Made by a program: the position numbers and the translations under genes
Notes under the pieces: generated by a model
What the model was told of the DNA's origin: nothing
Seen by the model: only the letters and a program-made list of their open reading frames with translations
Databases searched by the model: none
Assembly: GCA_038087875.1 (NCBI GenBank)
Contig: CM075984.1
Span: forward strand, 14,074,001-14,138,000
Length of the DNA: 64,000 nucleotides
Direction of reading: 5' to 3'
Source of the DNA: Malacoraja senta
Lineage: Eukaryota
In this document: in pieces, positions 23,623 through 61,038 of the stretch
Layout: every line of letters begins with the position of its first letter
How positions within the stretch are numbered: the stretch's first letter is position 1

Positions 23623-23627
23623 AAAAT

Positions 23628-32602: not shown

Positions 32603-35600
32603 CAATCATATTCTGCAGAATAGGTGCCTCTCCTTTGATGTCCCCTAGAGGCACACCGAGGATCGGGATGACTTCCATCTTTATACATTTCATGGGTATC
32701 ATTGTCACACCCTCATCCCTCCCCATTGTGCTTCTTCCAATCATAACATAAAGCCCACATTCCCACGAGAACGTCCTGGAACGTCCACCTGACGTCAAAG
32801 ACCACCTCCCATATCATGCATCGCATGTGCATTTAAATGAGACATCTTGTCATAGTGGGTGTGTGTACATATTCATGTAAGTTCATTGCCCATGCGCACT
32901 GAGTGTTTCTTCTGACCCTTACCCTAGTTCTATGCTGGGCTGTTGCTATCTTCTCTGTTCTCATCCTTGAAAAAGTCACCATCTGTACTTGTCCTTCACT
33001 CCCCCTATCCTCCCTACTATACTCCATACTATACAAAGGGTTCTTGTCTAAATCAACTTATACCTATTAACCCCTTTCTCACAATCCACACTTTTACTTT
33101 TGCTACTGCAATCTTTGATTTAGACTATCTGCCCCTTCTCTAATGCTAGCAGCAGAATCTTCGCCTCTCCCTATCTTCCTCTCATTCGATAGACAGGGAG
33201 GTGAGACCTGCTAGGGCTCTCGACACTGACCCATCAGGAGCAGTGTTGTTGGAGATGAAGGTGCAACATTGTTCCCCAAACATTACACACACCCCTCCCT
33301 TCTCAGCCAGTAGCATGTCTAAGGCCATGCGATTTTGCCAGGCCATTAGGCTGGTATCTGTCAGTTGTTCCGCTAATCCTTCAACCGCATCTCGAGTGTA
33401 ATTTATAAAGCGTTGTTGATTGTAGTATAGGTAGTTGATCCAGTCCACATTTTTATTAAGTGTGGACCACCAGAAGAGTATGGACTCAAAGCCCGCAGCT
33501 ATCTGGTTTCTGGCTTTGAATTCATCGGGTACCCCTCTTGGCACCCCTATCGCATCTATATATATGTGTGTGTCGAAGGGGCTGTCCTTCGGCTCTTTGT
33601 ATTGTTGTTGCTAGCCGGGAATAGGTAATGATAACTCTGGCAGGTCGCATCCTTTGGTAGGATGGGATTTGTGAATAGCTGTAGTATACATGACATAGCC
33701 CCAGGTGTCCTATCCCCAATTCAAGGGAAATGGTTCTGGAACCAGCTGAGGCTTAGCTCCGGCGCAGGCGTAGCAATTGGTGTGTTGCATACTCCTGGCC
33801 GTGTACATCATCCAGGCAAGCCAGGTGTTGGCTCCCTTCCCTCCTTTAGGTATTCCCTCCTCATATAATTGCCTTAATTCTGTTTCTCCTGCTACTATCA
33901 TTATCTTCAAATCCTTAGGCTCATTCTCCCTGTTCTATCTGCACATCCTTCCACTTTCCTGCATTTGAACACTCTGTATGTTTACATAGTTGGTTAACCA
34001 CCCAACACACGACCCACCAACACGAAATCTTCATTTTTCCCGCGGGTTCTTGTTAAATATTAAAGTCAATGGTTCCTCTCCTTTGCGCACAGTACACGGG
34101 CTGATATTGTTTGGTGGGGCCTCCACAGGACCCTTAAATCGGCTTGCGTGTGTCCACCCTTTTTCTTTTGTTCGTACTGCTGTCTCGGTGATTAGTAACA
34201 CCAGGTAGGGTCCAGTCCACTTAGGTTGCAGCTTTTCTTCCTTCCATGATGTTACAAGATCCCAGTCCCCCGCTTTCACAGAATGGATTGGAAAGTCGAG
34301 ATGGGGACTCTGTGCCAGCAGCCCATTGGTTCTTAATTCTGTAATAGAACGAGATACTCCCAGTAAATAGTTCCTTAGGAATACATCATTCCCTTGTATT
34401 TGTTGGGACCCCTTCTATCGTTCCTAAATAATAAAGACCTAACTTGTTCAACCTTTCTCTGTGTCTTAGTTGCTGAAACCCAGTCAACATTCTAATTGAT
34501 CTCCTCTATACTCTCTCTATTTTGTTGACCTTTTCCTATAATTATGCCTACCAAAATTATACACCATACTCCACAATTGACCTCACCAATACCTTGTACA
34601 ATTTAACATTACAACCCAACTTCTATACACAATGCTCTGATTTATAAAGGCCAACACACCAAAATCTTTCTTTACCATCCTATCTTCATGAAATTCCACC
34701 TTCAGGGAACCATGCACAGTTATTCCTAGATCCCTCTATTCAACTTCATTCCTCAATTCACAATCATTTACCATGTACATTCAATTTTGATTTGTCCTGC
34801 CAAGATGTATCATCTCATACTTATCAACATTAAACCCATCTGTCATGTTTCAACCCATTCTTCCAAATGACCTAAATCTCTCTGTACACTTTTTAAAATC
34901 TACTTCATTATTCACAACACCACCTATCTTAGTATCATCTACATACTTATTAATCTATTTTACCACACCAACATCCAGATTATTGATTCACATGACAAAC
35001 AACAGTGGACCCAACACACATCCCTGAGGTACCCTCTAGTCACTGACCTCCAACCTGACAAACATCCATCCACCATTGCTCTCTGACATCTCCCATACAG
35101 CCACTTTTTAATCCATCTTGCTATTCCTTACTAACCCTTCTTAACCAACCTTATTTCCTTATTGAACCTTGTCAAAGGCCTTACTGAAGTTCATCTAGAC
35201 AACATCCATCACTTTACCCTCATCAATTTCCCTAATAACCTTTTCAAAAAATTCAAGATTAGTCAAACATCACAATCACAAATCCATGCTAATTCTTCCT
35301 AATCCTACCCTATTCTTATACATTGTCTTAAGTATGCTTTCCATTATTTTGCCCACCACTGATGTCAAACAACGTTCTTGTTCAAACTCTACTCTTTTCT
35401 CACATCTCTTGTCCTCCTGTTCACTTACCTCAGGGCTATTATCTATTCATACCTGAGGGACAGCCCTCAGGTATTATTGAAATGGTACCAGGTATATCAA
35501 CCTTCTACCTGAACATCGGTCGGTAGTTTAGAAAACTCATACATACACCTTGTCTTCAGGTTTAAAGGGTCCTTCCTCCTGGTCCACCTCCAACAGCTTT

Positions 35601-38600
35601 TATTTTTCCTGTTCATAAATAGACTTGTATATCATAATTAACTGTTCCAAACTCGGTCTCTTGTAGGGACCTCTCCATTGTGCCACCTGCTCGGTTAGTT
35701 TGCATGCAACATCTCTTCAGTGCCAATGGCAGGGCATCGATCCAACTCAACTTTGTAATTAAACAAATCTTATTTATATTAACCTTCAATGTTCCATTTA
35801 TTCTTTCCACCATGCCTGTGACTGCAGGTGTTACATACCCAAATGTGTATTTTACTCTAAGGGTCTGTATCGCCAACTTAGCTACTCCCTAAATGAAAAC
35901 AATCTGTTGTCAAAGCTGATTTCTGTAGGTCTACCAAACCTCTTAATTACCTTATTCATCATAAACGACACTACAGGGCTTATACCTAATCTAGTCTGAA
36001 CTATATCCTGCCTTTTCCCGAGGTTATCATACTCTGTCCTACATTCTGAAGTATTTTTTTTTTTTAATCTCTCTCTCTCTCTTACATCGCTTGTTACTTA
36101 TGGAACAATACCAACAAATCCTCCTTTAAATCCCTTTCTCTCTTGGAGACCCCAGTCCTGTTAGGGCTTATATCCAGATTAATTTCACTCCTGATAGGAC
36201 TTTTTGATGAAACGTACCCCAAAGACATTCATTATTGGCATGTAATTCTCTGGCCCTGCTTGGTTCCGTCATAGGACTCACTTAGGTCCATTGTTTATTG
36301 ACAACACCTCCTCCTGCTGGTTTGCAAGTCTTTTTCCTATCTTTGCGATATTTCTCGACCGCAGAGACCAACTGTTCGCTGAATCTGCTTGACTTTAAGA
36401 AGAATGACATCCACCACAGTGGTTCATAATATAATGTTCATCAATCAACTCTCCACCTTTTCAGCTGGTTTTCCAGATAGGCTGCTGGATTACATTGTCT
36501 GAGGGCCTGCCATGCCCTCTGCCTGTTCATAATATAATGTTCATCAATCAACTCTCCACCTTTTCAGCTGGTTTTCCAGATAGGCTATTTGCCTTTCCTT
36601 CTGTATCTCCCCTTGTTCCTTGGGGTTCCTCTTAAGTGGGTAACATTGTCTGAGGGTCTGCCATACCCTCTGCCTGACTGTGTCAAACAGTATGCCATTG
36701 CTTGTTACATTGTTCGCATCAGTTTATACCATCCATCTTCAGTAGTTCTGTCACTTTAGTGGTTCCTATCACTTTTACCAACAGTGGCCTTCAAATCTTC
36801 CATGATCAATAATCGTCCACGTTCTCCTCCTCCAAAGCCCTAATCCATTTCCTCCCCCATCAGGGATATAGGGTGAGGTATTTTTTAGCCCTTTCAGTTT
36901 ATGGGTGCCCCAAGGGATAATCCGTGTCTGTCCTTCTCTTTTCTCTTTAAAGCAGTCTCATCACTTTATCCCAATGCTTCCAACTTTAATCCTTTCTGGT
37001 ATGCCTTCTTTCTAATTCTAAACTCAATTTCTTGCTTCTCAAATATTCTAGCCTCCTTGCAAAAATCTTCCACTAACTCCTCCTGCTTTATTACTTTCAC
37101 GCCTGTCGTTTTTCTACTTCTGTTATCTTCTAACTGCCTCTCTCTCCTTTCTTTCTAAACTTGAATGTTTACCAATTAACTTATTTCCAATTATTTCAAT
37201 CCATATTCACCACTATTTTAAATGTCCAATTCCTAGCACTAGTAACAATTTTCCAAATTATCTTTACTGACTAGAAATCTAAAAGAACATCAGAAAAACC
37301 AAAAGCTGGTTTCACAACTTCCCCTTCTTACGAGGATACAAACAATTAATCGTTATCTTACAGCTGTTCGTCGTCTTTCACCATGACCTGATTTATTTAA
37401 AGGAACATACACCTACCTACAGTGAACATTTTTGATTTTAATAAAACTTACTTACTTACTCTTACAATGTGGTCTACAAATACAATAAACAAAATAATTA
37501 TCACATATATAAACTTCCTCTTTCATTCCAAACCGTTTTTTACACACAAATCACATTCGTTCCATTCTTACTTCAAATAAATGCAACATCTTTTACATGT
37601 ATTAAAACTCAATATAACAGAATCAAATCATTTTTGTCTTCCAATTCCCTGGGTATTTCTCTGCCCCCAGAGGCTCAATCATTTTTGTCCTCCAATTCCC
37701 TGGGTATTTCTCTGCCCCCAGAGGCTCAGCATTCGCCCCAACGGACTATCAGGCAGAATGCTGGGGTCGGGCTTACCGCCCTTCCCCTCCCTGGTGGGCT
37801 TTCCGTTCTCATGGCCCATCCTCCCGATCGGAATTTCCCCCCGATCTTTTTCCCACCTTTCCTGCCTTGCCCGTACAGACCCCTGAATTCTTCAGGGCGG
37901 TATCCACAAGGTCTTATCAATCGCCCGAGTAGTACTTAATAGTCAGTTTTCTTACCCGGGTCCTGTGCACAAGAATCACTCGATTTGGCTCCCTCGCGAT
38001 TTTCCCACCGATCTTCCTCCCGATCGGATTTCCAACTACTCCCACTTCTTTGCTGAGTCTCTGTTCAGGGATACCACTCGCCCAAACCGCTGACGGCAAT
38101 CTAGGGGTCTAGGACCGCTGAAAACAACGGGGTGCACCGTCCCTTCTTCCGTATACCGCCGTCAGCCAGCCGGAGTGGGGGTCCCGAGACGAGCCCCCAA
38201 AAATTGTGAGATTCAAAAATCACAAACGCTTTTAGAGACAAAGTCAGCAAAGAAGCTTTTTATTCAAATCATATTCTGCAGAATAGGTGCCTCTCCTTTG
38301 ATGTCCCCTAGAGGCACACCGAGGATCGGGATGACTTCCATCTTTATACATTTCATGGGTATCATTGTCACACCCTCATCCCTCCCCATTGTGCTTCTTC
38401 CAATCATAACATAAAGCCCACATTCCACGAGAACGTCCTGGAACGTCCGCCTGACGTCAAAGACACCTCCCATATCATGCATCGCATGTGCATTTAAATG
38501 AGACATCTTGTCATAGTGGGTGTGTGTACATATTCATGTAAGTTCATTGCCCATGCGCACTGAGTGTTTCTTCTGACCCTTACCCTAGTTCTATGCTGGG

Positions 38601-38742
38601 CTGTTGCTATCTTCTCTGTTCTCATCCTTGAAAAAGTCACCATCTGTACTTGTCCTTCACTCCCCCTATCCTCCTACTATACTCCCTACTATACAAAGGG
38701 TTCTTGTCTAAATCAACTTATACCTATTAACCCTTTCTCACA
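32603..38742 (-). mobile_element. Second copy of the ERV (3' LTR cut by the gap; 5' LTR 38205-38742), inside the duplicated block
   Basis: Colinear and near-identical to 18031-24168, with the same downstream flank ATGTGTTATTGC. Confidence 0.9.
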
Positions 38743-40191
38743 ATGTGTTATTGCAGAAAGCAGTATGACCTGTGCAACTTGTGTGGTAACAGAGAACATG
38801 TGGAAAAGTTGAACACTTTATGAATATAATTTTACAGTAAAATTGTGCAGCATAGAAACATAGAAAATAGGTGCAGGAGTAGGCCATTCGGCCCTTCGAG
38901 CCTGCACCACCATTCAATATGATCATGGCTGATCATCCAACTCAGTATCCTGTACCTGCCTTCTCTCCATACCCCCTGATCCCTTTAGCCACAAGGGCCA
39001 CATCTAACTCCCTCTTAAATATAGCCAATGAACTGGCCTCAACTACCTTCTGTGGCAGAGCATTCCCACAGATTCACCACTCTCTGTGTAAAAAATGATT
39101 TTCTCATCTCGGTCCTAAAAGACTTCCCCCTTGTCCTTAAACTGTGACCCTTTGTTCTGGACTTCCCCAACATCGGGAATAATCTTCCTGCATCTAGCCT
39201 GTCCAACCCCTTAAGAATTTTGTAAGTTTCTATAAGATCCCCCCTCAATCTTCTAAATTCTAGCGAGTACAAGCCGAGTCTATCTAGTCTTTCTTCATAT
39301 GAAAGTCCTGCCATCCCAGGAATCAGTCTGGTGAACCTTCTCTGTACTCCCTCTATGGCAAGAATGTCATTCCTCAGATTAGGAGACCAAACTGTACGCA
39401 ATACTCCAGGTGTGGTCTCACCAAGACCCTGTACAACTGCAGTAGAACCACCCTGCTCTTATACTCAAATCCTTTTGCTATGAATGCTAACATACCATTC
39501 GCTTTCTTCACTACCTGCTGCACCTGCATGCCTACTTTCAATGACTAGTGTACCATGACACCCAGGTCTCGCTGCATCTCCCCTTTTCCTAATCGGCCAC
39601 CATTCAGATAATAGTCTACTTTCCTGTTTTTGCTACCAAAGTGGATAACCTCACATTTATCCACATTATACTGCATCTGCCATGCATTTGCTCACTCACC
39701 CAACCTATCCAAGTCACCTTGCAGCCTCCTAGCATCCTCCTCACAGCTAACACTTCCCCCCAGCTTCGTGTCATCCACAAACTTGGAGATGTTGCATTCA
39801 ATTCCCTCATCCAGATCATTAATATATATTGTAAATAGCTGGGGTCCCAGCACTGAGCCTTGCGGTACCCCAGTAGTCACTGCCTGCCGTTGTGAAAAGG
39901 ACCCGTTTACTCCTACTCTTAATGTGAATATATTTTTAATGATAATAACTGAGGGAGCAGAAAAGGCTGTTTTGCAGAAGCCCCATTGCTGCTTTGAGGC
40001 AGAAAGGTGGTGATGTATTGGACAATGGATCAAGTCATACATGGATGTCCTTGGAAGACAAAGGGCCAATTTTAGCTTAGTTAGTATAGCTTTGGAAAAG
40101 GTGTATTGAATTCTGAATCTTGCAGTTCATTTTTATATAAACTTTAATGCAATTATCACTGTCCCTTTTTTCTCTTTCCCCCTCCCTGTAG

Positions 40192-40251
40192 GCTGGAGCT
40201 CCAATGGGGCAGTTTCCAACAGGAAATTCCTCAACCAACCCATTCTTATAG
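40192..40251 (+). other. AGFG1: Second copy of the AGFG1 terminal exon, inside the duplicated block
   Basis: Identical to 25620-25679 at offset 14572. Confidence 0.85.
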
Positions 40252-43071
40252 CCCAAATGGTTGCCATCAGGAGTGCGGTGTCGGTGTGTGACGTCTCCAG
40301 ACCTCTTGCACAGTTTTGTTGCTCACTGATCTTAGCTTTAAACACGGGAGTCTCTGAAGCTTGTATTTTGTATAAATGGGATAATATATGCAGAAAAAGG
40401 ACTCCCACTCATGTCCTTAATATAACTGTTACTTGGCACGAAGGTTCAAGATGTAATCATATCATGTATATTGAAATGGGCTGATGTTAAGTTATTGCAA
40501 ATCCTACCTTTCATTGCTGTGCAGTACTGTACATATTTTTCTTGGAAATTTAGCTATTTGTGCACATTGGTATTTGTAATTTAACACACACGTTGAATGT
40601 GAAATGTTACTGAACAAAAGGGATTGTGAGATTGCTGAATCTACAAGGTTGAAATTGCTGCAACAACATTTGCCTTTTAAGTTCTGGTTTTGAACTAAAC
40701 CAGAAGTTTTATCAATTTGGTGACTTAAAATATAGTGGATTTTCTTTCTCCGAGGAAAATTCTCTTATTTATAATCTGAGCATGTAGGGAACTGTACCTC
40801 TGCCTAATAAAGGAGATCATGTTTTGCTACAGTTTGCAATTGACAAAATAAATACTGTATTAGTAAGAATGTTCATGGAAATTTATTTTAAATGTGATTA
40901 TTGTGATATTGCATTGCCATTCATTACATATGAAATCAAAGAAATTACAATGCAGGAGGAAGCCATTCATCTCTGCAGTTGAATTGATTGAATACATTGA
41001 TTGAAAGGTACAACATGGAAACAGGCCCTTTGGCCCACCGAGTTTACACCAACCATCTATCTCACTTTCACACTAGTTCTGTGTCAACCCACTGTCTCAT
41101 CCACTTCAAACACACTCGGGGCAATTTACAAAGGCCACTTAATCTACAAACCTGAACATTTTTAGGATGTGGGAGGAAATCGGAACACCTGGAGGAAATC
41201 CAAGCAATCACAGGAAGAATGTGCAAACTCCACACAGACTGCACCCGAGGTCAGGAACAACCCTGGTCTCTGGCACTGCGTGGCAGCAGCTCTACCAACC
41301 GTGCCAGCCTATTGTATTTAAGATTCTATCTAGATTCTAAATTTCAGAACATATTTAATTTGTTATGAGATGTTCTGTTATTATCAGAGGAGTTGAAAGC
41401 TATTGCATGTTGAGTTTTGTCATGATTGTCTCTGATTCAAAAGATAAGTAGTAAGCCATTCTATGTTTCAAAAAATAATTGTACAAAAACATTCGACCAA
41501 CCTCTGTTTTGGACCTGAGATCATCCAATTCACTGCCACTGGGTGACATTGGCTGAGAGAATATTGAAACTGATCTTTTTTTTAAATCACCTGCTTGTTC
41601 CCCATGGATTTGCCCCTTCCTATCTTGTCCATCTCCCCAGCCAAACGCCCCATTGGTGCAGTTGGTGTGTTTATCGGCTGTTGTAAATCACCCCTAATGT
41701 AGGTGGATGATGGAAGAATCGGGGACAAAATATTGATGAGGGGGAAAGACAGGATTATTGTCGATGGTTGCTTGATGGTCGGGATGGGCTGAAGGGTCTG
41801 TTTCCGTGCTGCACGATGTTGAATTCTATAAAGTTGGAGTAAATGGGGAGCAGGTGGAAAGGAGTCCGTACCCAACATAAGGAAGAGAGTTTGGAAGTTG
41901 TTCATCTTGGCCTAAAGCACAGAACTGTGTCAGACATCTTTGACATAACTATTTAATCAATGGCTTATTATCCACTAAAGCAACGTGAGGCCCCCCTCCA
42001 GCAAAATGCAGGATGAATGGTAGCGTATAATTTTTCTCCCAATCACTGCTCATTGTCCAAAAGATGCTATCCCCCATCCACAATAATACCGACTATGAAG
42101 GAAACCCATGATGCTCGATTCACATTGATTTTTCAAAATAAGCAAATGTCTTTCCTTTCATTTCAATTAATTTGATGCTCTCCTCCCCACTGTAGAATAT
42201 CTTGCAATTGGTGAAAAATAAAAAAAATGTTCTGAATCAGAATCAGATTTTATTCGCCAAGTATGTTTTGCAACATACGAGGAATTTCACTGTAGGAGTC
42301 TGAAGAAGGGTTTCGGCCCGAAACGTTGCCTATTTCCTTCGCTCCATAGATGCTGCTGCACCCGCTGAGTTTCTCCAGCATTTTTATGTGTACTGAGGAA
42401 TTTCACTGGCCAGGCCAGTCATACAATTAGAAGCAACAGACTCAAAAACACATTTTAACATGAACATCCAGCACAGTGACTCCTACACATTCCTCACTGT
42501 GATGGAAGGCGAAATAAAGTTCAAGTACTTCCCTTATGTTCTTCCTTGGTCGGGGGCCTCGAGCCCCCATTAACGGGATGATCTTGACTCCCGTAGCCGG
42601 TGGCGTATGGGCCCTCCGCGTCGAGGCGTTCAGCTCCTGCATCGGGGGGTTGTCAGCTCCCCGCGCCGGGTTATCAAACCTCGCGTAGGGGCTGGTCGAA
42701 CCTTCTGCGGCTTTGGAGCTCCCGACTAGCCTCTCCCGAGACTGCGAGCCCTTGATGGTAAGTCCACAGGCCGCGGTGGAAGCGATCCCAGGCAAGGGAT
42801 CCGCTCCGATGTTGAGTCCGCGCCCCGCGGTGGGGCTCACGACAGTCCGAGGCGGCTTCCAGCTCCAGCGATGGTAGGCCGCAGAGCCCAGAGAATGTGA
42901 TCCGAAAAATGACCACATCTCCGGGAAGGTAAGAACCTGAAAAAAAAGTTTCCCCTGATCCCCCCCCCACATAAAACAAACAAAGTACATTAAATCAAAC
43001 TTTTAACAAACACTAAAAATAACAAAACAATGAAAAAATCGCTACTGCATTTTGGGGACAAAGAGCATTCT

Positions 43072-43239
43072 TCAGAGCTGCGCTGTAATTTCAGTATCAT
43101 TTCTGGCCGGCGAAGTATTTTCAATGATTCCAGAACCAACGTGTCTCTTTCCTTTCCTTCTGGTTTGGACAAAACTGTGGATTCCTCTGACAAGGAAAAT
43201 TCCTGCAATTACTGCAAAGTAGGTCGCATAAATAAGAAA
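43072..43239 (-). CDS. SLC19A3: SLC19A3-like terminal coding exon (FLIYATYFAVIAGIFLVRG...ITAQL*)
   Basis: tttttgcag| acceptor; TM12 motif 'FLVYGSYFAVIAGIFL'; TGA at 43072-43074. The five exons sum to 1470 nt (489 aa + stop). Confidence 0.92.
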   Translation of the reverse strand, partial: FLIYATYFAVIAGIFLVRGIHSFVQTRRKGKRHVGSGIIENTSPARNDTEITAQL

Positions 43240-45923
43240 CTGCAAAAATTAAAAATATATATAAATTATTGTAAGATAATTAGTGCAATATTCACAGGCA
43301 TCATCACAAAATGGTTGCTGGGACTAATTGCAAAAAAATATAGAACACATATTTTCTGCTACATAATGTTAAAGAAAGAATATTACTTTAAAGCAGTTAA
43401 TTTATTATCTCCTCCCATTTGCTGGTTGATGGGTGCTCTCAGCAAGTCTTTAGCATCTTCATTGCCTGTACATGTTCCTAAGACTGGTGGAAGTAGATGT
43501 CCTATTGTATTATTCAACTAGTTTCAGATGCCAATGTGCTACAACATGCCACAAACTCAATCTGGTAATCTTTCGAGCAGCCTTCTTGTGTTTCTGCCTT
43601 GTTTAAATATATTCTTGGTCAAAGTGTTATAAGCTGTGCCAGTTTGCTTTTGGATCCTTCATTCAAATCATTGGCATATTATGAATTGCAGGGACCCAAG
43701 TACTGATCCCTATGGCACTCCACCGGTCTCTGCCTGATATGTGGAAAGAGACTCAATTATTCCTGCCCTCTGTTTTCTGTCTGTTAACCATTTCTCAATC
43801 CATGTCAATACATAATCCCCATTCCAAGTTTTTTTAGTTTTGCACATTAACCTCTTAAGTAGAACTTACGAAAAACTTTCCAAAAGTCCAAATATATTAC
43901 ATCCGAAAGTACACCCTTATCTATCCTCCTGGATACGTTTTCAAAAACTCCATTGAGAATAAACCCATGCCGACTTTGTCCAATTCCTTTAATGCTTTCC
44001 AATTGTCTGGTTATTATATCTCTGTTAGATTCGGCACCTTTATCCACTATTGATGTTAGGCTTATAGCTCAGTAATTTCCTACATTTTAGTTAATAGGGA
44101 GGTTACATTTGTCAACTTCCTATCTGTAGAAATTGCTCCAGTACCTCAAAAGATTTGAGAGCTGTTCTCCAATGTATCCACTGTTTCCAGCTGCTCCCTG
44201 GAATACTCTTGGATGCAGATTCTCAAGTGTTGGACATTTGCTAGCATTTACCCCCATTACCCCACTATTTCTTTACTATTACTGTTTCCCTTCAGTTCTG
44301 CCTCTCTAGACCCTGACCTTGGTGTTCTCCTTTGTGAAGACAGAACTATGCTATGTGTCTAGGAAGGAACTGCAGTTGCTGGTTGTCAGAGAGAGGAGAA
44401 CGTCTTCAAAGCAGGCATACCTTGAGATTTTCACAGTGGAGCCGACAAAATGTGTAGGAGGAACTTCCTGGAGAAGGGTATCGATCCGAAACATCACCTT
44501 TTCCTTTTCTCCAGAGATGCTGCCTGACCAGCTGAGTTACTCCGGCATTGTGCGTCTATCTATGGTATGTGCCTAATGTTCTGCTCCTTGGTCATAATTT
44601 TTTATTGTAAATAACCCCGTTTCTGGGTAATAGCTGGGCCTATATTTGTATTCACTTCCATTTCCTCTGCACATTTTTATTGAAGATTTCACATTTACTT
44701 TTTATGGTCACCACAAGCTTTCCCTCATCTTCATCTTCCACTGAAAGTTTGCTGAATTCTAAATGTTCTCCAACCTTCTGGCTTGTAGCCTTTTCTGGCA
44801 TATTAATGCCCCCCGCCATCCCTCGTATTGAAACAATCCCTAATTTCCTTTTCAAAAAAACAAAAAGCTGGAACAACTCAGTGGGTCTGGCACTCTGTGG
44901 AGGGAATGAGCAGATGACATTTTGTGTCAGGACCCTTCCTCTGACTGATGGAGTAAGGGGGAGAAAGCTGGAAAAGAGAGGTGGGGGAGGGGCAAAGCCT
45001 GGAAAGTGATGGGTGGATACAGGTGAGGGGGTCAGGGGGTGACTGGGAAATGGGTGGAGTAAGTGACAAAGTCTGGAGTGGAAAGAAGACAAAAGAGTGT
45101 CAGAGGAGTAGTGGAATGTAAAGCATGGGAGGAAAATGAGTGGAAGGAAATGGGGGAGGGGATAAAGGGGAAACATGTGACAGGGTGGGAGATAAACACA
45201 GGGAGGAGGGGTGACAAGGATGGTGGAACAAATGTGTTGGCACTGGAGTGGGGGTAAGGGGAAAGAGGGAGGTAGGGGAATATCCCTGAATCTCATATAT
45301 CCCTTTGATATCTCCTCTTTTATTGACCAAAATGAGAAATTTGCAGATTTCCTTTCCTAGTGGTGAGCTGAATGGGTTTAAAGCTATCATGATGGTTTCA
45401 TTATGTTAGCTGCGTTAATTTTTTTGGGGATCTGGAGAAGTAGTTTAGTTTCATTTAGAGATACAGTGCAGAAACAGGCCCTTCAGCTGACCGTGTCCGC
45501 GCCGACTAGCGATCCCCGTACACTAGCCTTATCCTACACACTAGGAACAATTTATACCAAAGCTGATTAAACTAATAACCTGTATGTCTTTGGAGTGTGG
45601 GAAGAAACCGAAGCACCCGGAGAAAACCCACACAGTCACTGGGAGAACGTACAAACTGTACAGACAGAATACGTGGTCAGGATCGAACCCGGGTCTCAGG
45701 CGCTGTGAGGCAGCAACTCTACCACCGTGCCACCGTGCCATCCAGTGATTAAGCAAATAAGTTAAAATTTACCGAAACTTGTAATAGGATTTGAACTTCT
45801 GTGCCCCACTGAAGAATTGCAGCCTCTGGAGTATTTATCTAGTTAACATAACCATTAAACATTACCATTGCTTTAATAAGTATACATGTATGTGTGTATA
45901 AACATATAATATGTATAAATAAC

Positions 45924-46065
45924 CTGGGTAATAATGTCCAAACCGAGGCCTCTTGAATCAACCACAATGATGGTCAGGAGGGATTGAAGTATCATAGCCA
46001 TCGCGGTATTTACTCCAAATATGAGAGCATAATGTCCCTTCTTGAGGTTAACTGCAATTTGAAAC
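45924..46065 (-). CDS. SLC19A3: SLC19A3-like coding exon 4 (FQIAVNLKKGHYALIFGVNT...VVDSRGLGLDIITQ)
   Basis: tccag| acceptor, CAG|gttatt donor, 142 nt. Matches 'FQIAVNL..RYALVFGINT...VVDQRGL'. Confidence 0.92.
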
Positions 46066-46584
46066 CTGGATTCGGAGAAAATCTTGTTATACTCAAATTT
46101 CTCAGCATTTTACGGAAAGATTTACAAAGTCATTGTACTTATTTAAACAAAGACTGAAGTTAACACTATACATGAGATTACTTGTTTTAACAAAAAAAAA
46201 ACTCATTCATTTCTGGGCTAAACATGTATCTAACCTCATGGTATTCTCCCCACCAGCCTTCACATCCAATACATCATTCTTTGACATTTCCGTCACCTTC
46301 AATGTTATCCCATCTTCCCATCCCCACTCTTTACAGATTTGTTGCCTTTCAGCACCAGAGACCCGGGTTCAATCCTGACTATGGGTGCTGTCTGTACAGA
46401 GTTTGTGACTGTGACCGCGTGGATTTTCTCGAGGTTTCCTCCCGCATTCCAAAGATTTGCAGATTAGCTTCTGTAAGTTGTCCCTAGAGTTAGGATAGAA
46501 CTAGTGTACAGGATGCTTATTGGTTGGCATGGACTTGGTGGGCTGAAGGGCCAGTTTCCATATTGTATCTCTAAGCTAAACCGC

Positions 46585-47392
46585 TCACACCTTAACTCTT
46601 TTGGTACACACATCCCCTCCCGCCCAAACTACCCCCTTCCCAGGTATTTTCCCTACAACTGCAGGAGATGCAGCTCCTGTCCTTACATCTCCCTCATATC
46701 CATCCAGAGACCCCTGCAGTCCTTCCAGATGTGACAGGTTCACGTGCACCTCCTCGAACCGCATCTACTCTATCCGGTGTTCCTGACATACCTCGTACAT
46801 CGGCAACACCACGCTTAGACTCAGCATCCATTTCGTCAAACACTAGCACTCAATCTGCCAAGGTCAATGGATTTCCCAGTTGGTAACCATCTTCATTCCT
46901 CATCACATTCCCATACTGACCTGTCTGTCTTGGGCTTCCTCATTGCCACGTGCAAACTGGAGGAGCAGCCCCTCATATTCCACATAGGTAACTTACAACC
47001 CAACAGTATGAACATTGAATTCTCCAATTTTAGGCAACTTACTAACCCCCCTCCCACACCTTCTTCCCCGCCCCCCCCCCCCTCTTCCCTGTGCCCCACC
47101 TGGACTGTTACATCACATACCTTTAGTCTTTTCATCTCTGGTCTTTGCCCAACCATCTACCTATCTAACCCCTCCCCTTCACCTGTGTACACCTTGTCCT
47201 TGTCAGGTTTGTCCTGCCCTTCCCCCCTTCCATCTTTCTTCCCCACCTCCCACTACGATCAGTCTGCAAAAAGAAGGGTTCCGACCCGAAATGTCGTCTA
47301 TCCATGTTCTCCAGAGGCAGTGCCTGACTCTCTGAGTTACTCCAGCACTTTGTGTCTTTTTTTGTAAACCAGCATCCGCAGTTCCTTGTTTT
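46585..47392 (+). mobile_element. Penelope-like element 3' part: GIY-YIG endonuclease remnant, pyrimidine-rich tract, hammerhead-containing terminal repeat (partial copy 32018-32402)
   Basis: FTCTSSN.IY.IRCS and CKLEEQ.LIF.IG.LQPNSMNIEFSNF, followed by gaagggttccgacccgaaatgtc...gagttactccagcac. Confidence 0.85.
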
Positions 47393-48108
47393 TACATGTA
47401 TCTACCCTCGTCTATTTAGAGAGATTTACTGTACAAGTGAGATCTCATTTCTGTCAATTCCTGAAACACAACTGCAAAATATCGAAATGGTTTGTTTTCC
47501 CATTACTTCATGTGAGATTTCAATCAAAATCTATCTCTTGTTGTAGAGTTGAACTGTTCTCAGATGATAATATTGGAGGTACCTTTACAAACCATAAAAG
47601 ATCACAAGTGCTGGGCAATAAATGTGGCTTTGTCAGGAATATCCATGTTCTCTGAAGTTTAAAAAAACAACTTATGCCATGGTCTGACATGGGCTAGGTA
47701 ATTAATGGGTAAATTCAACAGAATTAAATCCAGCATTTAAAATTAAATCCAGCAGAGGATGGATTTAAAATAAACCACTGAGAAAGTAAAAACCAAGCCT
47801 TTTGTATGTTTTTTCCTTTAGATCAGAAAAATCCAACATTCAGATAATGTTCAGCATTTTGCTCATAACCATAATCACAGTCTGAAAAGTGGTTCCGATC
47901 CGAAACGTCACCCATCCTTTCTCTTCAAAAATGTTGCCTCTGCCTTTCCCGCTGAGTTACTCCAGCACTTTGTATCTATCACAATTCTGCAGTTCAGTGG
48001 AAGTCATTACGTTAGACTTATCTTACAAATATTGTAACTATTTTGGTTAGTTCTGTACTTTCATTAAAAACAGCTGGGCAACGGTAAAGTTTACTGTTTC
48101 ATACTTGC

Positions 48109-48301
48109 ATCGTAATGGTAATCAGCAGCATGTAACAGCTCTTGAATACGCTGTAGCAAACATAACAAACCCAGATATTTTTGGTTAAAGCCATGGCATA
48201 TGAAACTCCGCTGTTCACCACTGAAAAGATGCCGAGTGCCAGTTCACCCCAGACTGCCCAGTCCAGCTCTGTATGCCCAATGGCAAAGGCACAGGTAGCA
48301 C
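48109..48301 (-). CDS. SLC19A3: SLC19A3-like coding exon 3 (GATCAFAIGHTELDWAVWGELALGIFS...FKSCYMLLITIT), GC donor
   Basis: ttcttcag| acceptor; 193 nt; donor AT|gcaagt. The frame joins the next exon as AT|G = Met. Confidence 0.88.
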
Positions 48302-49197
48302 CTGAAGAATAGAATGAGGAGAATCATCAATGTCAACAATCTTGACCCAGGCCAGCTGAGTAACCTACATGGAGTCTACATGATCCGTTCACCCCTTTAA
48401 TGAACAGTAATGTATTTGCCATAAACAATGTTTCCTTTTAAATCAGAAGCTCTGAAATCTGTCGGACAACACTCTCTGTCATTGAATCAAAGAGTCTTAC
48501 AACGTGGAAACTTGCCCACACTGGCCATGTCCCATCTACGAGTCCCATCTGCCTGCATTCGGCCCATATCCCTCTAAACCTGTCCTGTCCATGTACCTGT
48601 CTAAATGTTTCTTAAAAGTAACTCTGCTTCAAGTTCTGGTGAACTTCCCCAAAGACTCATTGTGGCTTCATTGACCATGAAGAGGTAATTAATTGCCAGA
48701 TAGATGAGCCCAGCAAAAAATTGTTAAATCTGCCAGTAGCAATAGACCTTACAGTCAGATAAGTTTCAATAAAGTAAAAATGATTAGCCTTCAGTTGAAA
48801 GCTCCGATTCACAGCTCTGATGTCTGAGGTACACTATGTCAGACGTAGATACAAGACAGGGTCAAGACATTTGTAACTGAAGACTGAGTATCATCCAAAG
48901 ACTGGGAGTGTCCCACTCTTGCCAATGATCCTGTTATTTATTTTTCTGTGACTGCATGAACAAAAACAAAGGAGGTTGTTTAACAAAGGTTGGGTGAACT
49001 TTTTGTAACTGTTGGCACCAGACATGTGGCGACTCTTGTGTACTGCCTGTACTGGGCGAGGTATGCTGTGTGATTTTACTGGGTTGTATGCAAAACAAAG
49101 CATTTCACTGTACCTATGTACATGCAACAATAAAGTATCATTGACTCATTGAAGCCCATTCAAACCTGCAGAGCATTCTTGTCAACATCCCAACATC

Positions 49198-49296
49198 TCT
49201 TCAATTGCCGGTGAAACTCTGTTGACTTCAGCCACATCTTTCCTGTGAAAAGTCATACTTCTCTTAAACGTTGGCAAGAGAAGGTCGGTTAGGAAG
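49198..49296 (-). pseudogene. Diverged ~100-bp relic of SLC19A3 exon-2 sequence inside intron 2
   Basis: Translates FLTDLLLPTFKRSMTFHRKDVAEVNRVSPAIE, versus FLTALFLPTSKRSKIFHREDVAEVHRMSPAIE at ~49965-50062. Confidence 0.8.
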
Positions 49297-49364
49297 CTAT
49301 TCTCTCGACACCCCCTACCCCCCTCCCCACCCCCACTTGTCCCTTCCCAATTTTTCTGTCATCT

Positions 49365-49569
49365 TAGAAACATAGAAACATAGAAAATAGGTGCAGGAGT
49401 AGGCCATTTGGCCCTTCGAGCCTGCACCGCCATTCAATATGATCATGGCTGATCATCCAACAGTATCCTGTACCTGCCTTCTCTCCATACCCCCTGATCC
49501 CTTTAGCCACAAGGGCCACATCTAACTCCCTCTTAAATATAGCCAATGAACTGGCCTCAACTACCTTCT
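49365..49569 (-). mobile_element. Short CR1 3' end in SLC19A3 intron 2
   Basis: (CATAGAAA)n tail and near identity to the ends of the 12632 and 24279 copies. Confidence 0.9.
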
Positions 49570-49664
49570 TTCCTTTCCTACTCCCACATGTTTACATCTG
49601 CACCAGCAGTAAGGATGTTGCATCAACGGATTTCTCTTTTGCTGATGAAAGCTTCTCGACTTAC

Positions 49665-50460
49665 CCATGAGGTTGGAGATGGTTTCTGCACCGCCATTGT
49701 ACACTGTAACATTCCCTGTTGGCTCAATGTGTTCCCAGAGCACCTGGATGTAACTTGCAACTTGGTTAAAGCCAGCCGTGGCCAATGCCCACCAAAGGCA
49801 CCAGCAGAGCAGCTGTGGAGATGAGTAGCATTCTTTGAAGTCAGACCACAGCTGGAGGAACACATTTGAAGCATTGTTATGATCTGTTATCATTGCCAGT
49901 CCATCAACTGTCTGATCACCCGGGTTGTCCTGGGATCTAGTCTTTCCACGCTTTCGTCGGCCATCTTCAATTGCCGGTGACATCCTGTGGACTTCAGCCA
50001 CATCCTCCCTGTGGAAAATCTTACTTCTCTTGGACGTTGGCAAGAAGAGGGCGGTCAGGAAGGCCACGGACACCGAAGCGAGCGAAATCACATTGAGACA
50101 GAAATACGAGGCGTTCCACACAGAGATTAAAACTTGTCCCAGAGTTGAGCCGAGAGTGTGTCCAACCAATATGACAGTCCGACAGTAACCAGTCACCTTC
50201 TGATAGTGCTCAGAGCTAATGGCACTGTAGATGTACGAAAAATAAGCTACATTGGTGGCAGCCACCAAACCATAGTCAAAGAGAAGATATTTCATGGCCA
50301 AAACCCCTCGGCTTAAAATTAATATTGTGCACTGAATAATTAAGGCAAAACCATGAAGAACTATGACAGGTTTGTGCCTTAAATAATCTGTGAGCAAGAA
50401 GGTGGGAATTAACAGTACCAAACACGAGTATGTCCATATTGGCAATATTTCATTCATAGC
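49665..50460 (-). CDS. SLC19A3: SLC19A3-like coding exon 2 (AMNEILPIWTYS...YNGGAETISNLM)
   Basis: tttcag| acceptor, G|gtaagt donor, 796 nt open. SLC19/reduced-folate-carrier motifs TDYLRHKPV, EHYQKVTGYCR and WCLWWALATAGFNQV. Confidence 0.92.
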
Positions 50461-51659
50461 CTGAAAGTAAGTAGGAAAATGTATAAGGATACTTCCAAAA
50501 TAAACAGATTATAAATAAAACTAATAATCCTAGAAATACAAAAATACAATAAGTATGCAGATTATATTTGGGATTATATAATATCCAGTGGTCATTTCTT
50601 TAATTGAAGAAGGGTTTCGGCCCGAAACGTTGCCTATTTCTTTCGCTCCATAGATGCTGCTGCACCCGTTGAGTTTCTCCAGCACTTTTGTCTACCTTCA
50701 ATTTTCCAGCATCTGCAGTTCCTTCTTAAAAACATAATTACTTTAATTGCAGTTTTCTGGGATTCTCAAAAATATTTTTTTGTTATTTGATACGAGGTTT
50801 ATTAGGTTCAGATGTAAATGTAGCAGAGTTGACAAATTGTGAGCAAGTTGATAGAAAATATTAAATAATCTTTTGTGATGAAAATATTAAATAATCTTTT
50901 GTGATGGAGAAGGTTTGAATCAGAAGCTTGTTTGGTGGTCAGATCGGATTGGAAGGTACAAACAGTTTGACTGTCTCTCCATTTGGAAAAGGAAAATGAG
51001 GTGTGGACTCAGTTGCACACACTTAGTGCCGTAGACTTAGGGACCTTTCAAGTTAGAGAAGCTGTGCTGGTGTTCTCAGTGCAGCTGGGCTTCTATATTA
51101 GTTGAATAGAAGTAAGACAATGGGGAGAAGTACAACAAGCTGGAGTAACTCAGCGGGTTAGACAGCATCTCTGGAGAAAAGGAATGGGTGACATTTCGGG
51201 TCGACAATGGGGCCGCCGCCACTGTCACCATCATGCGTGACATGGAAAACTCTCAAGCACAAAATATATTTCTAAAGGACTAAAAATAATATTCCTATTC
51301 ATGAAGATCTGCACTAAATCCTTAAACATCTAATTTTAAAAGGAAGTTACTCCAATTCTAGGAAAAAATCATTGAATGTTGCAAATAATAGATGGAGTAC
51401 ATTGTTCAATATAGTTCATGCTGTCAAAAAAAAGACACAAACTGCTGGAGTAACTGCGGGTCAGGCGGCTTCTCTGGAGAATGTGGACACCAAGTTCTGA
51501 ATTAACTCAGCAGGTCAGGCAGCATCTCTGGAGAAAAGGGATGGGTTCCGACCCGAAACGTCACCTTTTTGTTCCAGAGATGTTGGCTGACCCATTGAGT
51601 TACTCCAGCACTTTGTGTCTATCGTCAGTATAAACCTTCCTTCCTACACATTTTGTCAA

Positions 51660-52255
51660 GATAAAAACCTTTCTCTCAATGTCAGCAAGACAAAGGAGAT
51701 AGTGATCGACTTCAGGAAGCACACACCCCAGTTTGCATTGACGGCACCGAAATAGAGGTGGTTGAAAACTTAAAATTCCAAGGAGTCAATATCACCAACA
51801 ACTTCTCCTGGACCACCCATATTGAAGCAACGACCAAGAAAGCACACCAACGCCTCTACTTCCTTAGAAGGCTTTCAGAAGTTTGGCATGTCTCCTACAA
51901 TTCTCACCAACTTCTACAGATGCACCATAGAAAGCATTTTATCAGGCTGCATCGCAGCTTGGTTTGGGAACAGCTCCATCCAAGACCGCAAGAAATTGCA
52001 GCGAATTGTGGACGCAGCCCAGACCATCACACAAACCAACCTTCTATTGACTCCATTTATACCTCACGCTGCCTCGGCAAGGCCAGCAGCATAGTCAAGG
52101 ATGCACCCTGGCCACTCCTTCTTTTCCCCTCGCCCATCAGGCAAAAGGTATAGAAATGTGAAAACGCACACCTCCAGATTCAGGGACAGTTACTTCCCAG
52201 CTGAATCAGGCAACTGAATCATCCAACCAACAACTAGAGAGTGGTCCTGAACTAG
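51660..52255 (+). mobile_element. Rex1/Babar-type LINE RT C-terminal fragment
   Basis: LSLNVSKTKEIVIDFRK, KKAHQRLYFLRRL, LTNFYRCTIESILSGCI.AWFG. Confidence 0.82.
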
Positions 52256-52393
52256 TTACAGTTTGGCACTACCTAATGACCATTGCTATATATCCCCCTA
52301 TCTCAACTCTATATTAATTTATTACTTCTTGAGTGCTTATTTTAGTACAACAAAATATAACTTTGCAGATTAGAAGTTCCATCCAACACATAC

Positions 52394-52564
52394 CTGGTGA
52401 ACAGTTATGTTTTTGTCAGGTCCAACTAGATAAGCCAAAAAAAAAGAATCTATTGGCCTCATCACAGAGAAAAATCCAAAGGCACACAAAATCAGTGTAG
52501 GATACATCCATTCATTGGGTTTTCCTCTCTTCCAGCAGTCTGCAGCTTGGTAGCAGGATGACAT
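52394..52564 (-). CDS. SLC19A3: SLC19A3-like thiamine transporter, coding exon 1 (MSSCYQ...WMYPTLILCAFGFFSVMRPIDSFFLAYLVGPDKNITVHQ)
   Basis: ATG at 52564, donor CAG|gtatgt, 171 nt. Matches SLC19A3 '[23 protein letters not shown]...GPDKNLT'. AGFG1 neighbours SLC19A3 in other vertebrates. Confidence 0.88.
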
Positions 52565-56510: not shown

Positions 56511-57383
56511 TAGACAATAGGTAATAGACAATAGGCAATAGACAATAGGTGCAGGAATAGGCCGTTCGGCCCTTCCAGCCAGCACCGCCATTCAATGTGA
56601 TCAGGGCTGATCATCTCCAACCAGTAACCCGTTCCTGCCTCTCCCTATATCCCCTGACTCCGTTATCTTTAAGAACCCTATCTAGCTCTCTTGAGAGTAT
56701 CCAGAGAACCTGCCTCCACCGCCCTCTGAGGCAGAGAATTCCACAGACTCACAACCCTCTGTGAGAAAAAGTGTTTCCTCGTATCCGTTCTAAATGGCTT
56801 ACCCCTTATTCTTAAACTGTGGCCCCTGGTTCTGGACTCCCCCAACATCAGGAACATGTTTCCTGCCTCTAGCATGTCCAAACCCTTAACAATCTTATAT
56901 GTTTCAATAAGAATCCCTCTCATCGTTCTAAACTCCAGAGTGTACAAGCCCACCCGTTCCATTCTCTCAGCATATGACAGTCCCGCCATCCTGGGAATTA
57001 ACCTTGTAAACCTCCGCTGCACTCCCTCAATAGCAAGAATGTCCTTCCTCAAATTAGGGGACCAAAACTGCACACAATACTCCAATTGTGGTCTCAGTAG
57101 GGCCCCGTACAACTGCAGAAGGACCTCTTTGCTCCTATACTCGACTCTTCTTGTTATAAAGGCCAACATGCCATTCGCTTTCTCCACTGCCTGCTGTACC
57201 TGCATGCTTACTTTCATAGACTGATGAACAAGGACCCCCAGATCCCGTTGTACTTCCCCTTTTCCCAACTTGATGCCATTTAGATAGTAATCTGCCTTCC
57301 TGTTTTTGATACCAAAGTGGATAACCTCACATTTATCCACATTAAACTTCATCTGCCATGCATCTGGCCACTCACCCAACTTG
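56511..57383 (-). mobile_element. CR1 3' fragment
   Basis: WQMKFNVDKCEVIHFG...RGHSLRIRG; (TAGACAA)n tail. Confidence 0.92.
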
Positions 57384-58275: not shown

Positions 58276-60699
58276 TACCTTCTCTCCAGATATGCTGCCT
58301 GTCCTGTTTAGTTACTCCAGCATTTTGTGTCTACCCAAGCTTTATTCAATGGTGTTTTAGAAAATAGGTGCAGGAGAAGGCCATTCGGCCCTTCGAGCCA
58401 GCACCGGCAGTTTTAGGCAATGGATTTTGACATCATATGATTTTAAGGATGAGATACTAAAACTACAACACATTTGAACTCCTGCCTCTGCGATCAGCTC
58501 AGTCAGTACAGATTTCAGATCCAGAATTAGAATATGAGCTCAGCTGCCTGTAATTCAAATACCAGATCACTGATCCTTACAGCTGCCAGTAATTTAATAC
58601 CAAAACTGTTAATTTTTAAACATGGGAACCCCAGGTAATATTATTTTGTACCTTAAACATGATAGACAAATGTTTATCAAAGATTAAGAACCAGGAAAGC
58701 TGTCTGTTTTTTCCTCTTGGATGGAATGTGTATTTAGGAACAAATCAGGATAACAGTCAACTTAAAAACGTTCAAAATTAACTTGTATTTGCACTTTCCC
58801 TTGTCCTGATGAAAACTCTTTGACCTGAAACATTAACTCATGGATGGGGTGGGAGATTGCAACCTTCACGTGGTCTGCCCTGTTTTTCGACGAATGCAAT
58901 CAACCCAATCAAGTTCACAATCAAGTAAGATCAAATAGAACAAGTTGTCCTACAACTTTAAGCTGTGCATGCCATACACAAGAAGAAGTAGAAGCTCATG
59001 GATGCTACTATGTACCTGAGCATAGGACCTGAGCATTTCCAGTATCTTCTGTTTGCACATTGGGATGTAAGTTATTCAATGCCCTGCATTATGATCCAGA
59101 CTCATGCATTCAAATTCTTAAGCACTGGGGTGTTTCAGTTCAGTTAATTAAGTAAACCGAAAATCAAAACAGCTAGTGTTATTAATGGTGACTACAAAAT
59201 GTAACTAACATTTACCCATCTGTTTAACTAATGTTCTTCAGGGAAGGAAATCTGTCATCCTTACCTATTATGATCTAAACCTGACTCCAAATCCACCAAC
59301 ATTTGCCTTCAAAATGATCTGAAGGATCAGCTTCCCCCTCCCACTGTTTTTTTTATTTGCATATATTTTAGTTTAGTTTAGGTATACAGCAGGGAAACAG
59401 GCCCTTCGGCCCACCGAGTCCGCGCTGACCAGCGATCTCCACACACAAACACTATCCTACACACACTAGGGGCAATTTACAATTTGTACCGAATCCAAAG
59501 ATTGTACGAAGATTGTAAATTGTCCCTAATATGTAAGTTAATGCTAGTGTAGGGGTGATCACTGGTCGGCATGGACTCGGTGAGCCCAAGGGCCTGTTTC
59601 CATGCTATATCTCTAAAGTCTGAAGTAAAGTCTATATTGTATTGATGTAATTTTACCTGCCTCTACCACTTGCTCTGGCACCTTATTCCATGTACACAGC
59701 ACCCTCTGTGTGAAAAAGTTGTCCCTCAAGTCCCTTTTAAATCTTTCCTCTCTCACCATAAACCTATAGCCTCTAGTTTCAGACTTCTCTACCCTGGGGT
59801 AAGATGGTGGTTATTCACCTTCTCTAACCTCCACATGATTTTATATACGTACCCCTATAAAGTCATCCCTCATCCTCCTACGATCCAGAGATAAATGGCC
59901 CGGCCTATCCAGCCTCTCCCTATAACTCAAACTCTCCAGACCAAGTAACCTGCATCCTTTCTTGATTAGTACGGATGTCAGAAGTTATGGCGAGAAGGCA
60001 GGAGAATGGGGCTAGGAGGGAGAGATAGATCACCAATGATTGAATGGCAGAGTAGACTTGATTAGATTAGATTAGATTAGATTCCATTATTTGTCATTCA
60101 GACCTTTCGGTCTGAACGAAATTTCGTTGCCTGCAGTCATACATATAATAATAAATAACAAAACACACAATAAACACAAATTAACATCCACCATTGATGG
60201 GCCGAATGGTCTAATTCTGCTCCTATCACATGACCTTATGACCTTTCCGGTCTCTGGCATTGGTTTGTCAATAAATATTGCCATTAGGTGCCATTATATT
60301 GATGGAGGAAGAGCTTTGCAAGATTGGGCTGTGGGGATTCAGAAGGCATTCAAACAGGTTAAAGCTCACCAAAATGTATTATTCACTGCCATAGAACAGA
60401 TCGCCATAACATTCCTTCTGAGGACCATTTTGCAGAGTTGTGCGTAAGTGGAGAGCAATGCGGCAAATCCATGCTCTTTATCCTCATAAATCTTCTTTAC
60501 ACCCTTTTCAGTTCAATGACATCTTTCCCAATGCAGTACTCCAAATGTGCCCTTACCAACGTCTTGTACAGCTGTAACATGACATCCTACTCCTGTACTC
60601 AGTCTGAAGAAGGGTCTTGGCTCGAAACATAAAACAATACACCTCTAAATAAAAATATAGAAATCCTCTAATATTAAAAATGCATTAACACATTAATTA

Positions 60700-61038
60700 T
60701 AAAATAATGAGAGGAATAGATCAGGTAGATGCGCAGAGTCTCTTGCCCAGAGTAGGGGAATCAAGAACCAAGGTGAAGGGAAAAAGATTTAATAGGAATC
60801 TGAGGGATAACTTTTATGGTGGGTGTATGGAACAAGCTGCCAGAGGAGGTAGTTGAAGCAGGGACCATCGCAACGTTTAAGAAACAGTTTGACAGGTACA
60901 TGGATAGGACAGGTTTGGAGGGATATGGACCAAACACAGGCAGGTGGGACTGGTGTAGCTGGGACATGTTGGCCCGTGTGGGCAAGTTTGGCCGAAGGGC
61001 CTGTTTCCATTGTATGATTCTATGACACTCTATGACTA
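60700..61038 (+). mobile_element. CR1-type 3' fragment
   Basis: VGVWNKLPEEVVEAGTIATFKKQFDRYMD...GYG followed by a 3' tail. Confidence 0.8.

Follow-up and report, generated by a model that had tools for sequence, protein, structure and literature searches.

The window, i.e. the whole 64,000-nt stretch of the genome of the skate Malacoraja senta analysed here (assembly GCA_038087875.1, contig CM075984.1, positions 14,074,001 to 14,138,000), carries a gene of the SLC19A3 (thiamine transporter 2, THTR2) type, whose product lacks several of the side chains that hold thiamine in human SLC19A3. The gene lies on the minus strand, running from 52564 to 43072, and on the basis of stop-to-stop reading frames and splice contexts it comprises five exons with 1470 nt of coding sequence, i.e. 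489 codons followed by TGA. All exons are found in one contiguous, gap-free stretch (43072-52564), and their order is colinear with Leucoraja for all exons and with Rhinoraja for exons 1-3 and 5. The locus is a real five-exon gene. A preceding interpretation of the DNA letters (the original prediction) had claimed a complete 489-aa frame at this place, and both the length and the coordinates were confirmed. It had described the gene as a diverged paralogue with altered specificity and had proposed as checks an SLC19 phylogeny including chondrichthyans, a search for a canonical tandem paralogue, an estimate of selection and a structural model.

The coding part of exon 1 (52564-52394, minus strand like all the exons) consists of 57 codons starting with the ATG at 52564-52562, encodes the first transmembrane helix (TM1) and ends at the donor CAG/GTATGT, where the slash marks the exon boundary. 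Its RPIDSF motif contains D39 of the window protein, the equivalent of human E32. Exon 2 (50460-49665, 796 nt; acceptor TTTCAG/, donor ATGG/GTAAGT) encodes TM2-TM8 and the bulk of the former thiamine pocket (L63, W66, Q100-C101, K114, L117, D119, Y120 and N127), as well as the Ser at human position 297 and the Glu at human position 320. Exon 3 (48301-48109, 193 nt), encoding TM9-TM10, ends in phase 2 at ...ACGAT and is followed by a non-canonical GC donor of intron 3 at 48108-48107 on the minus strand (AT/GCAAGTATGA, i.e. AT/GCAAGT). Exon 4 (46065-45924, 142 nt; acceptor CCAG/G, donor CAG/GTTATT) encodes TM11 with the conserved VVDSRGLGLD motif and is equal in size to exon 4 of the canonical SLC19A3 gene of the sawfish Pristis. 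The coding part of exon 5 (43239-43072; acceptor TTTGCAG/) adds 55 codons for TM12 and the C-terminal tail, and the TGA at 43074-43072.

The GC donor of intron 3 and the CCAG acceptor before 46065 have to be used together, since only then does the 489-codon frame close. The resulting exon 3-4 junction, ITITM-FQIAVNLKK, is the same in the sawfish protein P0004 and the Amblyraja protein P0363, and splicing of the Pristis locus at the GC donor yields a product identical in every residue to the NCBI 503-aa protein P0004. Leucoraja, Rhinoraja and Pristis all have this GC donor at intron 3, whereas GTGAGT is found here in the canonical paralogues. Intron 3 is a conserved GC-AG intron, the donor of which is ancestral in batoids. 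A model in which the GT of CAA/GTATGA was joined to 'IAVNL' left AA instead of AG at the acceptor and suggested a broken acceptor, hence a pseudogene; it was dropped because the GC donor with CCAG gives 489 codons and a junction in agreement with P0004 and P0363. The idea that the GC donor is a skate-specific lesion was ruled out, as the donor is shared with the sawfish, for which the model is full-length.

Exon 2 alone matched the Folate_carrier family (PF01770) with E=3e-88 and exon 1 alone with E=1.5e-11. For whole-protein searches and fold prediction the 95%-identical Amblyraja orthologue P0363 was used in place of the spliced window protein, the exons of which were queried singly. P0363 matched PF01770 over profile positions 2-412 of 412 (E=6e-153). 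Its AlphaFold2 (AF2) model (pLDDT 81.4, pTM 0.79) contains helices TM1-12, with confident TM11-12, the part encoded by exons 4-5. Among PDB structures it superposed best on apo SLC19A3 8z7r (TM-score 0.95, root-mean-square deviation 1.7 Å), followed by SLC19A2 and SLC19A1. The orthologue of the window gene is thus predicted by the model to have the 12-helix fold of SLC19 and the major facilitator superfamily (MFS).

The first database matches were skate, sawfish and stingray proteins annotated as 'thiamine transporter 2-like', followed by two kinds of shark protein. When 48 SLC19A3-type proteins were placed in a maximum-likelihood tree with invertebrate homologues as the root, the window protein grouped with proteins of Leucoraja, Rhinoraja, Pristis, Hypanus, Heptranchias, Heterodontus, Hemiscyllium and Chiloscyllium in a divergent clade (support 100/99), apart from the canonical SLC19A3 of its relatives. 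The sister group of the divergent clade (joint node 99/97) is that of canonical elasmobranch SLC19A3 (98/95), and neither of the two includes the single chimaera gene; the duplication therefore took place in the elasmobranch stem. Vertebrate slc19a3b forms a separate clade, of which the window protein is not a member. The placement outside the canonical clade, together with the separate canonical skate copies P0127, P0358 and P0364, bears out the view that this is a diverged paralogue and not the canonical THTR2 orthologue. A scenario in which its residues are simply those of a single-copy shark SLC19A3 is excluded, because canonical copies with E32, W94, E110, E120 and N297 coexist in skates. 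The assignment of the window gene as the skate orthologue of an elasmobranch-specific tandem SLC19A3 duplicate is well supported by the tree, and the divergent clade has persisted since the shark-ray split.

The Amblyraja radiata protein XP_032886899.1 (P0363, 489 aa) is 95.3% identical to the window product (23 residue differences), and the Leucoraja protein P0002 differs from the window product at 22 of 389 modelled residues (94.3% identity). The gene is thus already in RefSeq of related species, under the automatic name 'thiamine transporter 2-like'. A literature search with SLC19A3 and shark or skate terms gave no mention of SLC19A3 among the 15 top-ranked papers listed. Within the divergent clade, Heptranchias perlo P0006 ('isoform X2') is identical to the canonical P0008 over about 85 residues in TM4-TM6, which suggests either a chimeric gene model or gene conversion between the two tandem genes.

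The two copies have the same orientation in Leucoraja, where 7.4 kb separate the end of the canonical gene P0127 from the divergent copy downstream of it; in Pristis the canonical copy lies 16.8 kb upstream. The canonical exons measure 171, 826, 193, 142 and 171 nt, of which exons 1, 3 and 4 (171/193/142) are equal to those of the divergent copy. The expected tandem paralogue was thus found in relatives but not within the window: tblastn and blastn searches with the Leucoraja upstream region did not detect it there, and nothing SLC19-like was seen at 52.6-64 kb. Colinearity with the intergenic region of Leucoraja and Rhinoraja stops at about 60.3 kb, leaving window positions 60300-64000 beyond it. 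The source species probably carries an extra insertion beyond this point, so that the canonical upstream paralogue would fall outside the window. On the other side, a convergent gene with an ArfGap domain lies downstream of the divergent copy in Rhinoraja; human SLC19A3 has AGFG1 as its neighbour. In its genomic surroundings the divergent gene thus agrees with SLC19A3.

The canonical copy of Leucoraja erinacea has an exon 4 of 82 nt instead of 142 (L005 11338-11419; L001 ~873-1050). The exon was shortened after an insertion, bounded by the direct repeat GCTCTACTTCTGA, and lacks the conserved VVDSRGLGLD segment, and the spliced Logan transcript L008 (SRR24105891) has the same short exon. The suggestion arising from it, that the canonical copy is broken in all skates, was ruled out by the intact canonical proteins of Amblyraja and Rhinoraja.

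Human residue numbers were fixed by aligning exons 1 and 2 with HMMER to the SLC19A3 chains 8z7r and 8s4u. These alignments confirmed all the substitutions that had been read from an ungapped comparison (E32>D, F56>L, T93W94>QC, E110>L, F112>D and E120>N) and the retention of W59, Y113 and E320. The reported retention of N297 in a GFNQ motif proved to be wrong. The Asn of GFNQ is N293. The human segment with N297, VLNYVQ, is VASYIQ in the window protein, giving Ser; since N297 is actually lost, the error runs in the direction that strengthens the case for altered specificity. Further changes in the window protein are P33S, Q86H, Q107K, Y151H and V319A.

In human SLC19A3, Glu110 hydrogen-bonds thiamine's aminopyrimidine ring, and E110Q lowers the affinity 7-fold, whereas with E110K there is no binding; Asn297 keeps the thiazolium ring in place and takes part in closing the outer gate, and N297A causes a ~250-fold loss of thiamine affinity (PMC11447181). 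The methyl pocket is formed by Thr93, Trp94, Leu97, Met106 and Val109, and Glu32 and Glu320 provide further polar contacts (PMC11447181). Pyridoxine is bound through the same N-domain residues as thiamine (PMC11686366). Position 120, Glu in the thiamine carriers and Arg133 in the folate carrier, was recognized as a specificity determinant in work on SLC19A1 (PMC9794768). At the Glu110 site the window protein has Leu and the divergent clade L, F, S or V; at the Asn297 site the window protein has Ser and the clade S, T or Y. The methyl pocket has Gln-Cys in place of Thr93 and Trp94, still contains Leu97 and Met106, and has at position 109 the Leu that canonical shark copies also show. The change of Glu32 to Asp is conservative, that of Phe56 to Leu also occurs in canonical shark copies, and Trp59, Tyr113, Glu320 and Lys380 are kept.

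The same division runs through the residue table of the two clades. All canonical chondrichthyan copies keep E32, P33, Q86, W94, E110, E120, N297 and V319. All divergent copies have D32, S33, A37, H86 and A319; they lack Trp at 94 (C/N/G/L/Y/M), are non-acidic at 110 (L/F/S/V) and have S, T or Y at 297. Batoid divergent copies have in addition K107, H151 and, at position 120, a residue that is not acidic (Asn in the skates, Arg in the sawfish and Lys in the stingray), and skate copies D112. Retained across the divergent copies are W59 (not in orectolobiforms), Y113, E54, D75, Q300, E320, K380 and M384; L97 is retained in the batoid copies and is I, T or F in the shark copies. When 186 positions conserved to at least 95% in 25 canonical sequences were compared, 14 were replaced in every divergent member, and these fell disproportionately in the pocket (4/8 pocket positions against 10/178 others, Fisher p=0.0012). 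Several of the clade-wide replacements outside the pocket flank pocket residues (positions 31, 33, 37, 98 and 319).

The ratio of nonsynonymous to synonymous substitution rates (dN/dS) in exons 1-3 of the window, Leucoraja and Rhinoraja was 0.25-0.43 (binomial p from 6.6e-6 to 5.5e-4 against neutrality), and the proposed check of selection thus indicated evolution below neutrality among skates. Against the sawfish the ratio was 0.34 overall and 0.24 for exons 4-5. In the Leucoraja-Pristis pair it was 0.30 for the divergent copy (0.29 without the cytoplasmic loop) and 0.20 for the canonical copy (0.15 without the loop). Since dN/dS is well below 1 but about twice that of the canonical copy, the gene is constrained, though about half as tightly as its neighbour.

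These results favour, with a probability of about 0.68, a maintained elasmobranch tandem duplicate of SLC19A3 that has lost the thiamine-holding side chains and probably carries another solute. The duplicate arose in the elasmobranch stem and has been kept under purifying selection, at about twice the canonical dN/dS, while Glu110, Trp94 and Asn297 were lost and Glu32 became Asp in every clade member, and the batoids lost Glu120 and gained Lys107. With the gating and coupling residues Trp59, Tyr113, Asp75, Gln300, Glu320 and Lys380 in place, the protein could still function as an alternating-access carrier. Its N-domain cavity would be less acidic and devoid of the hydrogen-bonding Glu and Asn for the aminopyrimidine and thiazolium rings; such a cavity would not be expected to bind thiamine or pyridoxine with high affinity, so that a different solute would be carried. 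High-affinity thiamine uptake would then fall to the adjacent canonical paralogue. We infer the altered specificity from the mutational data on human E110 and N297 (PMC11447181) and from the clade-wide concentration of replacements in the pocket.

The protein could instead be a sub-functionalised THTR2, a tissue-specific thiamine or pyridoxine carrier of lower affinity or different pH dependence, for which Asp32, Trp59, Tyr113 and Glu320 suffice. Part of the aromatic clamp is indeed kept, and single Ala mutants of this clamp do not impair binding in human SLC19A3 (PMC11447181); Glu320, Lys380, Asp75 and Gln300 are retained as well, and in both sequence and fold the protein comes closest to thiamine transporters. 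This explanation is nevertheless considered unlikely, given that Glu110 and Asn297, the losses most damaging to human thiamine binding, are gone throughout the clade, that Trp94 and Thr93 of the methyl pocket have gone too, and that the same genomes hold a canonical copy with all the thiamine-site residues.

A number of observations weigh against a maintained carrier of changed specificity, and most of them would suit a decaying or truncated relic, either unexpressed or yielding a 389-aa, 10-helix product unable to complete transport, in which the altered pocket reflects relaxed constraint. RefSeq models of both Leucoraja and Rhinoraja end at 389 aa, because the GC donor is read through to give Q-V-stop. 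In Rhinoraja longicauda exon 4 is deleted: about 1.9 kb (window 46335-44473) are reduced to about 18 bp, with no Ns, between repeats resembling short interspersed nuclear elements (SINEs; L002 ~17484-17503), so the 389-aa model of this species also reflects the physical absence of the exon. The exon side of the GC donor is weak. All the Logan contigs with skate exon 2 (L006 and L007) were colinear with genomic DNA and unspliced, and the search for C-terminal fragments revealed no transcript-like open reading frame spanning exons 3-5 and no skate fragment; the Leucoraja canonical copy, by contrast, does have a spliced transcript (L008). Within skates, exons 4-5 carry too few substitutions to be distinguished from neutrality (p 0.06-0.28), and the doubled dN/dS relative to the canonical copy would also suit a relic. 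For the window protein alone, tested at 185 positions conserved in 23 canonical sequences, the enrichment of replacements in the pocket was not significant (4/8 against 39/177, p=0.086). Finally, the former pocket positions 93, 94, 110, 112, 120, 293 and 297 vary among clade members, a pattern that fits either lineage-specific retuning or lost constraint on an unused site.

Decay of the skate gene nevertheless appears improbable. dN/dS among skates is significantly below 1 in exons 1-3, and the value of 0.24 against the sawfish extends constraint to exons 4-5. Exons 4 and 5 have open frames and good splice sites in both the window and Leucoraja, and the two exons are part of the product annotated in Amblyraja. 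The GC donor, for its part, is ancestral in batoids and is used by full-length RefSeq models, and the clade has been maintained since the shark-ray split. The maintained duplicate with another solute is thus retained as the preferred explanation.

As to the nature of that solute, it may be speculated that the clade abandoned cationic vitamins altogether and carries a neutral or anionic solute, e.g. a phosphorylated vitamer, in a cavity that is neutral to positive. The loss of Glu110 and Glu120, the gain of Lys107 and the Arg or Lys of sawfish and stingray at the position of the folate-carrier determinant would shift the cavity charge in this direction. The proposal is a tentative one with a small chance of being correct; if it is true, the departure of this clade from cationic vitamins would constitute a natural charge-reversal experiment within SLC19.

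The window contains a large duplication that involves the 3' part of the gene. Positions 18032-32402 are a 99.66% copy of 32604-46969, separated from it only by the N run 32403-32602, and exons 4 and 5 recur without any difference in this 14.4-kb copy (at 31357-31498 and 28502-28669, respectively). The description of the gene as intact therefore holds for the reading frame, with the qualification that exons 4 and 5 are present twice in the window, across an N gap. The duplicated region is single-copy in Leucoraja and Rhinoraja and abuts the gap, so it is probably a false duplication of haplotypes made during assembly. A near-identical duplication beside an N gap that doubles two exons raises the question of whether the apparent gene is itself an assembly or annotation artefact joining exons of different copies. 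This is very improbable in view of the gap-free contiguity of exons 1-5 (43072-52564), their colinearity with Leucoraja and, for exons 1-3 and 5, with Rhinoraja, and the Amblyraja annotation of the same 489-aa product.

Otherwise the window is repeat-rich throughout and no second protein-coding gene was seen. A degenerate 99-bp copy of part of exon 2 (85% identity to exon-2 nt 399-497) lies in intron 2 at 49198-49296 on the minus strand, outside the coding model, and reads ...LPTFKRSMTFHRKDVAEVNRVSPAIEE. Leucoraja (L001 14883-14981) and Rhinoraja (L002 14530-14614) have it at the orthologous position; intron 2 of the sawfish lacks it. A repeat of about 1 kb occurs four times (12632-13701, 24280-25348, 38852-39920 and 56538-57380), with 94% identity among the first three copies and 79% to the fourth. 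Open reading frame fragments of a long interspersed nuclear element (LINE) encoding endonuclease and reverse transcriptase (Pfam PF14529 and PF03372) were found at 14192-15833 on the minus strand.

The residues that determine specificity in SLC19 (Glu110, Asn297 and Glu120/Arg133) have until now been studied through point mutants of the human protein. In the divergent clade they are replaced in a gene that is under purifying selection, beside an unchanged sister copy, which provides a ready-made pair for the study of specificity shifts in a drug-relevant family. The automatic name 'thiamine transporter 2-like' probably overstates the role of the protein. Two further points are worth correcting, the annotation of the gene at 389 aa in two skates and the second copies of exons 4-5 in the source assembly.

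Compared with human SLC19A3/THTR2 (8z7r, 8s4u and 8z7x), the window protein has about 50% identity and, as modelled for its Amblyraja orthologue, the same 12-TM fold. Trp59, Leu97, Met106, Tyr113, Asp75, Gln300, Glu320 and Lys380 are common to both. The window protein differs by Glu110Leu, Asn297Ser, Trp94Cys, Thr93Gln, Glu120Asn, Gln107Lys, Glu32Asp, Pro33Ser, Gln86His and Val319Ala, and thus lacks the key polar contacts to thiamine and pyridoxine in what would be a less acidic cavity. The canonical elasmobranch SLC19A3 proteins (e.g. Amblyraja P0358, Pristis P0122 and Heptranchias P0008) form the sister clade, related through one tandem duplication in the same orientation, and the two copies are adjacent where both have been located (Leucoraja and Pristis). 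Like the window gene, the canonical copies have five coding exons, but they retain all the thiamine-site residues, have a GT donor at intron 3 and show dN/dS of 0.15-0.20 against 0.29-0.30. The orthologues of the window gene in RefSeq (Amblyraja XP_032886899.1, 95%; Leucoraja erinacea XP_055501612.1, 94%; Pristis pectinata, 73%; Hypanus sabinus, 68%) share with it D32, S33, H86, S297, A319 and a non-acidic residue at 110, and the sawfish and stingray proteins differ from those of skates at positions 120 (Arg/Lys against Asn) and 94 (Gly against Cys/Asn).

The slc19a3b proteins are likewise SLC19A3-type paralogues that have left the thiamine consensus (Gln/His110, Asn112, Asn113, Asn93), but their clade (100/99) is a distinct and older one to which bony fishes also contribute, and they keep Glu32, Asn297 and Glu120; their signature Gln110/Asn112/Asn113 is not found in the window protein. 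The reduced folate carrier SLC19A1 is of the same family and fold, with about 34% identity. Its folate determinants Arg133 and Gln377 correspond to SLC19A3 positions 120 and 384, where the window protein has Asn and Met and the sawfish and stingray divergent copies have Arg or Lys and Met. With Leu at the position of Glu123, the window protein lacks the pterin contact of SLC19A1 as well as its folate determinants, whereas the sawfish and stingray copies resemble the folate carrier in the basic residue at the Arg133 position.

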